A program made the translations under genes and the position numbers. A DNA stretch of 64,000 nucleotides from Anthoceros angustus (taxonomy: Eukaryota > Plantae > Anthocerotophyta): positions 124,001 through 188,000 of the forward strand of contig VJWM01000226.1 of the NCBI GenBank assembly GCA_010909165.1, in the 5' to 3' direction. Of this stretch, positions 1 to 44,649 are shown piece by piece. Every line of letters starts with the position of its first letter. Position 1 is the first letter of the stretch. Under the pieces are notes generated by a model that was given only the letters and a program-made list of their open reading frames with translations, had not been told where the DNA came from and searched no databases.

Positions 1-1321
1 TGATGATCACATACCGTCCATCTTATGAACAAAGCGAGGTGCAACATCTTGTGAATATAATGATGGATACACCTGAAAAATATAAATTTTCATAGAGAAG
101 TCAATTAACATGTCATAACACCATGAGATATAAAATAATGCAAGAAGAAAATTGATGGATTTGTAAAATAATAACTTACATGCCATCCAACTTGAGCTAA
201 ATTTATAGAATCGATATGCGTGTCGTGGCAAATAAAATAGAGACGTGGGAGTTTGAGTAATGTTGATGTTGGGTTGAGATGGTTGCCAAAAGCTAATTCT
301 AGATCCTCCTCCATTGAATGTTCCATGAACATTGCCAACTATCTTGCACAATTAAAAGGTGAACTTGGTCAAGTATTGAGAAAGAAGAAAGGAAATATAG
401 TCTCAAATTGTAATATATCGATGGTTTAATGAATATAGTGAAATTATGACATACATGAGTTAGCTCGTCGGCGTCGCTTTCAATATTAGCAAAATTGCTA
501 GAGGTATTCTTGCTTTGATCGATGAAAGAATTGCGGAGGATGTGCACGCTTTGATCAATAAAACCCTCCTGCGTCATAGGCCGTTGTATAGGGATAGTTC
601 CTTGGGGCATGATCCTACTTCTACATGATAGAGCTGCTTAGGACGTCGCACCCCATTTGCTGATATTTGTAATTGGGATAACTCTAGAGGTGGTTTACGC
701 AACATGTCAACAACAGAGTTCCATACTTTGCTACAACGACAACAACAACAACAACAACAACAACAACAACAACAACAACAACAACAACAACAACAACAAC
801 AACAACAACAACAACAACAACAACAACAACAACAACAACAACAAAAAAAACAACAACAACAACAACAAAAACAACAATAATAATAATAATAATAATAATA
901 ATAAAATAGTAGCTGCATATATCGATAACTATAGTTGACATAAAAATGAAAAAGGCGAGTCATACGCGTGTGTGAACCCACATACTTGAATCACATGATC
1001 TTTAAAAGATGGATGTTGTAAAGTCGGTGGTGTTCCACCTTCACACAATCTACTATAGTGCCATCGAGGCGCAACATAAACAAGATAAAGCAATTGAGTA
1101 TCTTACATTGCATATAATAAAGATGCCATGAAAAAGGTACCAAGAGATAGTGGAGTATAGTATATACATTATGGGATTCCACAAATGGCACATGAACATT
1201 CAAGTCCAAAGCACCATCCGGGATGGGGTGAAACTTATTTTGAGCATTCGCGCGGCTAGCATATGAGAAATGCACAAGATAACAAACATCAACCCCAACA
1301 CTAAAGTTGCGACGACTTCAT
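1..1321 (-). CDS. Neprosin-family protein, 5' part (runs off the window start)
   Basis: Signal-peptide-like start; DGTIVDCVKVE..PTLQHPSFKDHVIQ and SCPQGTIPIQR (neprosin activation peptide); NLAQVGWH; GT-AG introns. Confidence 0.8.
734..903 (+). repeat. Compound microsatellite (CAA)n-An-(CAA)n-(TAA)n inside the neprosin gene (representative)
   Basis: Also at ~6707-6894, 8079-8263, 13504-13644, 21519-21672, 29737-29902, 35182-35336, 36015-36176, 41003-41210, 56585-56775 and 59346-59545; length varies ~140-210 bp. Confidence 0.97.
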
Positions 1322-1402
1322 GATTACAAAGCTTTGGGTCTAAGCAATATGCAAATGGATGTAATTGATCAACGATAATTTGTAGGATGGTGGTTGAGGC
1401 AC

Positions 1403-1410
1403 ATATATAG
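1403..1410 (-). promoter_or_regulatory. Candidate TATA box of the neprosin gene
   Basis: CTATATAT on the minus strand ~82 nt upstream of the ATG, present in nearly all copies (one base pair shorter near 14160); position-based inference only. Confidence 0.45.
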
Positions 1411-1526
1411 GCATTTTGGGATTTTTCTCGATAATATGGACAAAAGCGAAATAGCTTTGCTCTCTTGGTGTTAGACTAAGCATATCCCTCTCTATGTTAT
1501 GGAGTTTTGAATGATTTCCACGGTCT

Positions 1527-41635: not shown

Positions 41636-41840
41636 GATTACAAAGCTTTGGGTCTAAGCAATATGCAAATGGATGTAATTGATCACGATAATTTGTAGGA
41701 TGGTGGTTGAGGCACATATATAGGCATTTTGGGATTTTTTCTCGATAATATGGACAAAAGCGAAATAGCTTTGCTCTCTTGGTGTTAGACTAAGCATATC
41801 CCTCTCTATGTTATGGAGTTTTGAATGATTTCCACGGTCT

Positions 41841-42351
41841 CTACTCAACGGCTTGTAAGTTGCAACCATGAGTGAGTGGAACAAGGAACCCGTCCCTCTT
41901 CAAGCCTTGGTGAAGAATTTGGCGTTTCTCCACCGATCCCGAGCCGTGGGCGACAACCTTGTAAAGGCCATACTTGGAGTAGTTGGTGGTTCCGGGAGTC
42001 ATCGGGATGGTGTCGACTAGCGCGCCATTCAAATACATGTTCACGGCCACCGTCTTTGGTGCACAACGTTCACGGTGATCGAGGTGTCGTATACTCCGTT
42101 ACAGCAGTGGCAGTTTAGGATGAGTAGTAGCACAGAGCCACCGTTGGCGCCATGCCGGGCGCATCAAGGGCGCCGTCGCCCAAGATCCGGAGCGAGGGAC
42201 GGTCGTTGAGGAGCGAGAACTTGAGCTCCCCTCGAGCGCATCCGCCCTGGTGTAATCATTGTTGTTTGGTTCGAGCGGTGCGTTGGTGTCGATGATTGCG
42301 AACGTTTCCGTGGTCCACTATAAGAATCGCGGTGTTTTTCAATGCATTTTA
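41841..42351 (-). CDS. PL7/citrate-binding-protein-like coding region
   Basis: ORF 41841..42050 VNMYLNGALVDTIPMTPGTTNYSKYGLYKVVAHGSGSVEK. Confidence 0.7.
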
Positions 42352-44649
42352 TGTCACAATCGGATACATGCGAGAGCGAACAAGCGGGACAAGCCGACGA
42401 TGATGGATGCTAGCTATGTGATCGGTAGCTAGGCAATTTGCGCTAGTGTAGGAAGGCGACAACGGCGAGGCTAGGGTGTGCATTAGGAGCGTGATTGAGG
42501 CGGATAGGCCAACCAAGGTTAGACCGGCCAGATTAGGTGACCGGATGACACTAACCTAACTGCAGAGATTCTCGACATCGGGAGCGAGCATTGCGGAGAG
42601 GACCGTGAAGGAATTCTTGGTGAGATGGGAAGGCAACCATCAAGAGGACCCGGTGGGACACCGAGGCCTTTATCGAAACTTTTCAACACCTCAAAGGCTG
42701 GGCGAGGAGAATGAAGAACGAGGCCCTCCCGATGCTCACTAGAGAAAGGAGGAGGGTGTCACGATCGATACATGCAACCGTGGAGGGGACAAGCGGACAA
42801 GCCAGCTTGATGATGGATGCTAGCTATGTGATCGGTAGCTAGACGGACCGCAGTTAGTGTAGGAAGACGCAAAGAACGAGGCTAGGGTGTGCATTAGGAA
42901 CGTGATTGAGGCGATAGGCCAACCAAGGTTAGACCGGCCAGATTAGGTGACCGGATGACACTAACCTAACTGCAGATTCTCGACATCGAGAGCGAGCATT
43001 GCGGAGAGGACCGTGAAGGAATTCTTGGTGAGATGGGAAGGCAACCATCAAGAGGACCCGAGCTGGGACACTGAGGCCTTTATCGAAACTTTTCAACACC
43101 TCAGCAAAGCTGGAGCAGAGAATGAAGAACGAGGCCCTCCTGATGCTCGCTAGAGAAAGGAGGAGGATGTCACAGTTAGATACATGCAAACTGTGAGGGG
43201 ACAAGCAGGACAAGCCAGCTTGATGATAGATGCTAGCTATGTAATCCATAGCTCAAAAGTGTATGCCTCTACATCTTCGTGTCTTGGTCTCTCGCTCAGG
43301 AATGCCGATTACATTTTACAACGTAATTTACAACCTAAAGTTGTAAAAAGAATGGACTTAAATAGGTTGGAAATTTGCGACGTGGCGGGGAAGATTATCA
43401 CGTCATAGAGTTGATGACGTGGCCACATCGCAAATTGGGTGGGTAAGGTATTAATAGCACTTACAAGTGCTATTAATACAAGTCTCCTAAAGGGTCATTC
43501 TCCATTAAAGGGGTTTGGGTCCCTAAAGGCCAAAAGTGATCCTCCAAAAGGGGCCAAAAGCGTATCATCTCCATAAAAGCACTCTTTACACATGTACAAA
43601 AATACATTGACCATGTTATTTTTCGCGAACACTTATCTTGTGACAGGCGAACAAGGTTCATGGATTTCACCTTCACAAGAAAGGGATTTCAAGGATCTAT
43701 GAATGGTGCTAGGAATCCTAGAGACACCTCTGTCGCAGTGATGATTTCCTATCAAGGTGAATAGTAGGCAAGCCAAACCAAACTAGTCCAAAGAAGGCAA
43801 ACTCGGACGTCCGACGAACCAACAACGCAAAGAAGAAACTCCCAAGCCGATCTGAAGCAACTACGTTGGACGTCGCGCAATTGTGAAGGACATCAACCGG
43901 CGGCCTAATCAAGGCCATCTCGAGAGGACCAACTACGGCAGAAAAGCACGAGCGTTTGGCGCAATGTGAGTACATAGCCACAGGAACTCCATTGTTAGAG
44001 TGCAAAACAAAGGAAGGCGGGCAATGCGCCGACGTAGGGGCGCATTTGCGCGAGTCTCTGCGGAGGACGTCTTGGAGACCCGATCTTGCGGACGTCCGAT
44101 TTCCTACGATCTTCTTTGGGCGTCCAACGTGATGGAAGTGGTGGAGTGGATGCGGACGTCCGGCGCATTTGTATATGAATTACTTCTATATGATGTAGGC
44201 GTACGCTTTGATGCGTAGGGGTGGGTGTGAGCATGGTTAGGTGACCACTAATTTCGGAAACGGGCGAAACCGTCTCTAAGTGGTGTTTTGCATTACGTTC
44301 AGATTTTTTAACAATTGAAATTATGCCCATTTTGACCGATATTTTTAGGGCTATTCGTTTTTAACTTCATAGATATATTTAATTTTTTATTTGGAAAATT
44401 GATTTATTTGATATATTATTGGTTTAAGTCTTGCTATATATGCTAGGGACAATTTATTATACAAACTCGTAAGTGACCGACGGGCGGAAGCGAGGCGGAA
44501 GCAGCGGGATGCTCGTTGACTTTTAAGGGTGATAATGAGGTTATCCACTTCCATCACCGTGCTCCTAATGTTGAGACTCACAAGCATTGGATTTGTGCAT
44601 GCATCACGCTCGAGCTCAACCTTGACGTGAGGGGATTGTCGACCATGTG

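Follow-up and report, generated by a model that had tools for sequence, protein, structure and literature searches.

The family of plant proteins to which neprosin belongs (DUF239) is represented in Arabidopsis by 50 genes, eight of which, with a seven-exon structure, follow one another in strict tandem along 20 kb of chromosome 4 (cluster IV); departures from the catalytic dyad are known within the family, and whole Arabidopsis clusters lack the Glu/Glu pair (PMC12806958). In neprosin itself the catalytic pair is formed by E188 and E297, and the E188Q mutant is inactive (PMC9343461). Here we describe a tandem array in Anthoceros angustus (Anthocerotophyta), in a 64,000-nucleotide stretch of contig VJWM01000226.1 (positions 124,001–188,000; hereafter “the window,” to which all coordinates below refer), where the amplified gene is a DUF239/neprosin-family member. 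An earlier interpretation drawn from the letters of this DNA (the “sequence-only reading”) had proposed that each unit pairs this gene with a second one, coding for a protein like those of polysaccharide lyase family 7 (PL7), and that the two are amplified together under dosage selection. We asked how much of that proposal holds, and how the array compares with its closest described counterparts.

A Neprosin-Like Gene in a Tandem Array

Self-BLAST of the window returned dozens of co-linear direct matches of 1–6 kb at 88–97% identity, far above chance. Together with mapping onto a reference unit (U6, 27177–32568, minus strand, 5,392 bp), from which the coordinates of units U1–U9 are taken, these matches delimit nine units within the window, arranged head-to-tail and all in one orientation, with pairwise identities of 90–97% over kilobases. 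The main block, established by the same two approaches, occupies 1–44223 (minus strand) and comprises U1–U8 plus the initial 316 bp of U9; the remainder of U9 (unit positions 320–3660) lies at 54327–57717 (minus strand), as its 95.4% identity to the reference unit and the junction sequences indicate. U1 is truncated by the window edge, U4 is a 1.7-kb remnant after a large deletion, and U9 is interrupted at unit position ~320 by a 10.1-kb insertion, after which the array resumes at 54327 and terminates at 57717, at the start of a Copia-type element. Unit spacing is irregular (1.3–8.2 kb) because of the U4 deletion and of partial internal duplications in U2, U3, U5, and U7.

Each unit holds two co-oriented minus-strand features: the neprosin-like gene and, upstream of it, a stretch resembling an open reading frame (ORF). 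The last neprosin exon occurs in nine copies plus one remnant, and the upstream stretch in nine copies, eight of which lie directly upstream of a neprosin 5′ end. The sequence-only reading had described a 5-kb macrosatellite at 1–44223 with the same co-oriented pair in each of about nine copies. Its kilobase-scale head-to-tail units stand, as do nine copies of either feature in a single orientation; the array is, however, irregular rather than evenly spaced, it extends past the proposed end to 57717, and the pairing is direct in eight of the nine cases. Retroelement-derived DNA, chromodomain fragments included, makes up 1.5–3 kb of the 5.4-kb unit. The GC-rich (guanine- and cytosine-rich) third of the unit, i.e., the upstream stretch and retroelement debris, is two to three times more divergent among copies than the AT-rich neprosin part (substitutions, 6.5 vs. 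2.5%; gap openings, 2.9 vs. 1.7%). Rfam and tRNA scans of the window gave no matches.

The neprosin-like gene has seven exons, spans ~2.1 kb, and is carried by the 5.4-kb unit, with all of its coding signal on the minus strand. Its last exon in U3 (12011–12445, minus strand) matches PF03080 with 46.7 bits (cutoff 22, E = 3e-12) and the solved neprosin chain 7zu8 in the PDB with E = 1.5e-6; PF03080 matches are weaker on two further copies, including U6 at 24.3 bits. Against 1.84 billion representative proteins, the last exon retrieved 37 relatives, the best at 37% identity. Among the ten best of these, PF03080 is present in all ten and PF08787, the PL7 (Alginate_lyase2) family, in none; their long members are mostly run-on predictions in which two to four neprosin domains are fused, i.e., tandem arrays in angiosperm genomes. 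A metagenome scan with the neprosin feature found no relatives, and a word search with the last exon gave no match, probably owing to the length filter. A local hidden Markov model (HMM), built from the proteins of eight of the ten best relatives, scored E = 9e-15 on U3 and, in each of the units, recovered matches in collinear order to the second pro-domain exon, three DUF239 exons, the Cys-rich exon, and the last exon, aligning the Cys-Pro-x-Gly-Thr region of the pro-domain among them. Searched as a single exon, the second pro-domain exon of U6 reached 23.6 bits against PF14365 (cutoff 39.2). The two remaining exons, for the signal peptide and the first part of the pro-domain, were read directly and mapped by tblastn; in U3, the start codon is followed by a hydrophobic, signal-peptide-like stretch. 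From the PF03080 and 7zu8 matches and the HMM pieces in every unit, the tandem amplification of a neprosin-like gene proposed by the sequence-only reading is supported.

Only six copies have a gene body that runs collinearly from its start codon through to its stop, and the ATG is kept in all six. The copy in U3 (12008–14076, minus strand; PF03080, 7zu8, local HMM, and ATG column) retains its start codon and signal-peptide-like N-terminus intact, and its last exon (12008–12454) and Cys-rich exon are each in a single frame. In U6 (28238–30318, minus strand; PF14365, PF03080, and tblastn frames) the second pro-domain exon is intact (29365–29733) and the last exon frame-broken. Three copies identified by anchors, tblastn, local HMM, and ATG column, all on the minus strand, are collinear and frame-broken as assembled: U2 (5203–7308), U5b (20015–22095), and U8 (39512–41635). 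The U9 copy (55073–57196, minus strand; tblastn, local HMM, and ATG column) has the exon with the first dyad position in one ORF (55962–56207), and the U7 copy (33681–36584, minus strand; anchors, unit mapping, and tblastn) contains an internal duplication of unit positions 1985–2843. An (ACA)n microsatellite sits in the second neprosin intron of every copy (29736–29881 in U6, unstranded; Tandem Repeats Finder, TRF). It has 40–61 repeats and differs in length by copy (733–877, 6706–6870, 8078–8242, 29736–29881, 35187–35306, 41002–41182, and 56596–56741).

The gene departs from neprosin at both catalytic positions. Specifically, a Gln lies opposite the consensus Glu at the first dyad position in the local HMM alignment, and an Asp lies opposite Glu297 of 7zu8 in the PDB alignment, i.e., the Glu188/Glu297 dyad is replaced by Gln and Asp. 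Because these residues take the place of the catalytic glutamates, the predicted product is less likely to be a prolyl endopeptidase than a family member that is non-proteolytic or has an altered chemistry.

Frame Breaks: Errors or Decay

We consider it somewhat probable that the array arose by ordinary tandem expansion of one DUF239/neprosin-family gene, with an upstream fragment carried along and with the frame breaks being mostly errors. Amplification would probably have proceeded by unequal crossing-over between neighboring copies, with the upstream gene fragment and the adjoining retroelement debris most likely traveling as passengers; later remodeling would then have brought two transposon insertions, one deletion, and the internal duplications of parts of units. 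On this account the neprosin-like gene of the ancestral unit would have been intact, as some of today's copies may still be.

The pattern of small indels among copies is abnormal. The ratio of gap openings to substitutions is 0.4–0.8 in the array and, in a pair of unrelated Copia copies, 0.64; most gaps between array copies are of 1–2 bp. Small indels fall at CG in 24% of cases against a background of 5%. Of the indel events, 54% are common to two or three copies out of six, with all possible combinations represented, while only 19% of substitution columns are shared. The first pro-domain exon (13704–13850 and its equivalents) has zero substitutions in six copies, yet one frame break, in a C-run beside a CG, is common to all of them; this break is the strongest individual candidate for systematic miscalling of bases. 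A consensus that retains any base present in at least two copies, analyzed like the joined-exon model with local scripts, returns the DUF239 exons to single frames. In a majority consensus, frame breaks remain. The high indel ratio, the CG clustering, the incongruent sharing of indels, and the restored consensus exons point to base-calling errors that recur with sequence context in methylated repeats, and we infer that most of the frame breaks are base-calling or assembly errors of this kind rather than inherited mutations.

Several observations weigh against this account. Since no neprosin copy has all of its exon blocks in one frame as assembled, real decay of these copies is a live possibility. 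Exons and introns vary to a similar degree (0.018 and 0.024 substitutions per site, respectively), and last-exon substitutions are distributed 15/13/5 over codon positions 1/2/3, with no excess at third positions. There is, then, no sign of purifying selection in the exons—though part of these differences may be errors too—and the dosage selection suggested by the sequence-only reading finds no footing in these figures. Gene conversion, moreover, could be an alternative cause of the scrambled indel patterns.

A rival explanation is that of a dead macrosatellite: passive amplification or later decay in transposon-rich methylated heterochromatin, where the indels would be genuine mutations and both the upstream stretch and all neprosin copies would be true pseudogenes. 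We hold this to be unlikely. Besides the similar variability of exons and introns, it accounts for the several frame-broken exons in each copy, for breaks that survive even the majority consensus, for the invasion of the array by the 10.1-kb and Copia elements, and for the abundance of partial and rearranged units. However, pseudogene decay typically shows an indel-to-substitution ratio of ~0.1, and the ratio in the array is several-fold higher. Decay also sits poorly with indels that cluster at CG and return at identical sites in mutually incongruent sets of copies, with a shared break in an exon otherwise free of substitutions, and with a start codon retained in six of six collinear copies. 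On balance, we retain tandem expansion with mostly erroneous breaks as the preferred account.

The Upstream ORF-Like Stretch

The upstream stretch in U6 lies at 30585–31002 (minus strand; anchors, nine-copy alignment, and frames); its other copies, placed by anchors on the same strand, start at about 1586, 8939, 14339, 22362, 23744, 36857, 41900, and 57464, the last of them truncated. It is GC-rich, ~110–130 codons long, and on the same strand as the neprosin-like gene, whose start codon follows its stop by only ~260 bp. In the nine-copy alignment, copy-specific indels of lengths other than multiples of three are present and every copy is frame-broken.

The claim that this stretch is a PL7-like gene found no support in our searches. 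Our Pfam searches covered ~60 pieces of the window overall, of which ~20 were in-frame pieces of the upstream stretch from eight copies, and on every one of the latter PF08787 was without a match at E up to 10—the very result that the sequence-only reading had named as speaking against it. NCBIfam likewise gave no match to the stretch. A PDB search with a single piece and with a tiled profile returned noise only and no PL7 structure; two word searches, one using the tiled profile, gave no match; Atlas searches gave immunoglobulin-like noise and then nothing; and a metagenome scan found no relatives. An N-terminal half or signal peptide for the stretch was not found, and the DNA immediately upstream of it is antisense to a putative chromodomain.

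PL7 proteins carry three signature motifs in order: R-x-E-L, Q-I/V-H, and Y-F-K-A-G-x-Y. By eye, the stretch contains look-alikes of the first and third (RGELKF, then NYSKYGLY), followed by a stop, with no look-alike of the middle motif. Since it is ~110–130 codons long and abuts retroelement-derived DNA, it is at best a 3′ fragment, and could represent the terminal part of a gene. Against its treatment as a passenger fragment stand two points: every junction between its motif-like pieces reads in frame in one copy or more, and a consensus that favors insertions yields a 198-codon ORF over it. The stretch may thus be more than debris. A further candidate, that it is the antisense of an integrase C-terminus, was set aside, as no long plus-strand ORF runs into the chromodomain and there was no SH3_Tf2-1 or rve match.

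In a second rival explanation, dosage selection would have co-amplified the neprosin-like gene with a divergent PL7-type jelly-roll gene, the two products working as a secreted pair. In its favor, adjacency and orientation are constant in eight of nine copies, the motif look-alikes come in the right order with a stop soon after, and the insertion-favoring consensus gives the 198-codon ORF. We nevertheless judge such a pair very improbable. It is opposed by the lack of a PF08787 or other family match on any piece, of PL7 among the PDB matches (tiled profile included), and of relatives in the word searches and metagenome scan; by the missing N-terminal half and signal peptide; by the ~260 bp that separate the stretch from the neprosin start codon; and by the absence of PF08787 from the ten best neprosin relatives. 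Furthermore, adjacency inside one array reflects a single duplication history rather than independent evidence of linkage, and the recurrence of both features in all units therefore carries no information on functional coupling. Nothing points to the glycan-recognition and protease-fold partnership envisaged by the sequence-only reading; its proposed first member is a short stretch beside retroelement debris, with no N-terminal half and no detectable relatives. The chance is slimmer still that the upstream ORF is a real, highly divergent PL7-type jelly-roll gene whose breaks are all assembly errors, and that, with a neprosin-like partner catalytically altered to Gln/Asp, it was co-amplified to form a secreted module of two proteins (e.g., a glycan binder and a pseudo-protease acting at the cell wall or in symbiosis). 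Were the stretch shown to be a genuine PL7-type gene, this pairing would be novel and would merit a test.

Transposon-Derived DNA In and Around the Array

Directly upstream of the ORF-like stretch, on the opposite strand, each unit carries a putative chromodomain-coding retroelement fragment (31269–31919 in U6, plus strand; TRF, Pfam, and PDB). It lies in a 403-bp tandem sub-repeat, present in 2.1 copies here and in one to three per unit. The fragment reaches 20.7 bits against Pfam Chromo (cutoff 25.1, E = 3.8e-4), and six of its six PDB matches are chromodomains, the best at E = 0.03. Pfam searches on pieces of the units found no integrase core, reverse transcriptase, or gag. Copy number varies on two nested scales, that of the 403-bp chromodomain sub-repeat and that of a larger block of ~1 kb present one to three times per unit (31065–31919; equivalents, e.g., at 2257–3486, 24442–26089, and 42591–43253).

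A transposon-borne unit, in which a cargo-carrying long terminal repeat (LTR) element derived from a chromovirus bears the neprosin gene in antisense and recombination between LTRs has strung LTR-plus-internal segments together into the array, would explain why every unit has a chromodomain fragment on the opposite strand, but is most doubtful given that no LTR ends could be defined, that reverse transcriptase, integrase core, and gag were not found in the units, and that a tRNA-iMet-type primer-binding site is absent inside them, the sole match being that of the Copia element at 57857.

The 10.1-kb insertion that splits U9 (44224–54326, unstranded; unit mapping and junctions) does not belong to the repeat, has a GC content of 0.52, and gave no Pfam match. 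The tetranucleotide GGTG stands on each side of it and is single in intact units; LTRs or long terminal inverted repeats were not found in it. It contains Cys-rich minus-strand ORFs at 50531–52319, also with no Pfam match, and 20-nt periodic repeats at 52458–52626. Copia-type LTR retroelement DNA (57718–64000) cuts the array at 57717. This element has a perfect tRNA-iMet primer-binding site at 57857–57868 and Pol_BBD, gag_pre-integrs, rve, and SH3_retrovirus domains at 59965–61481; a second partial Copia copy, 91% identical, occupies 62378–63802. Within the Copia-rich DNA, and out of array order, is a stray 0.6-kb piece of an array unit (59375–59978) that corresponds to unit positions 2557–3158 and includes the signal-peptide exon, the first pro-domain exon, and the microsatellite.

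Comparison With Known Systems

As it stands, the significance of this locus is small: it adds a further example to a family in which tandem arrays are well documented. Two warnings do follow from it, namely that frame breaks at methylated repeats in this assembly are not to be read as pseudogenization, and that adjacency within one array is no evidence of functional linkage.

Three described systems invite comparison. To the PL7/Alginate_lyase2 family (PF08787), which includes the plant citrate-binding-protein-like proteins, the upstream stretch is linked by two short motifs seen by eye and by a stop soon after the second. The PL7 beta-jelly-roll takes ~200 residues or more, and the stretch, at ~110–130 codons, is too short for it; it also differs in having no N-terminal half, in being frame-broken in all copies, and in finding no support from HMM, PDB, or homologue searches.

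The neprosin-like gene is closer to its own counterpart. With the Nepenthes neprosin, a glutamic prolyl endopeptidase (PDB 7ZU8; PMC9343461), it shares the DUF239 catalytic domain and, putatively, the pro-domain, and the conserved Trp/Gly-rich strand region of that enzyme aligns with the last exon here at E = 1e-6. However, even the exon that is conserved best shows only ~35–40% identity, Gln takes the place of Glu188 (the change that inactivates neprosin as E188Q) and Asp that of Glu297, and the position of Gln173 resembles, by eye, a His.

The nearest likeness is to cluster IV of Arabidopsis DUF239 genes (PMC12806958), which is of the same family, runs head-to-tail in a single orientation, and has seven exons, predicted secretion, and a non-canonical dyad. 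Compared with that cluster, the units here are larger (5.4 kb) and include, besides the gene, an ORF-like stretch and retroelement debris; the copies are 90–97% alike, i.e., young or homogenized, and are broken as assembled; the dyad is Q/D here and X/Q there; and the host is a seedless plant. The habit of DUF239/neprosin genes to multiply in tandem thus extends to a seedless plant, in which the Gln/Asp dyad argues against prolyl-endopeptidase activity. Tandem DUF239 arrays with departures from the canonical dyad are known from Arabidopsis (PMC12806958), and the array described here is an ordinary kind of gene-family expansion.

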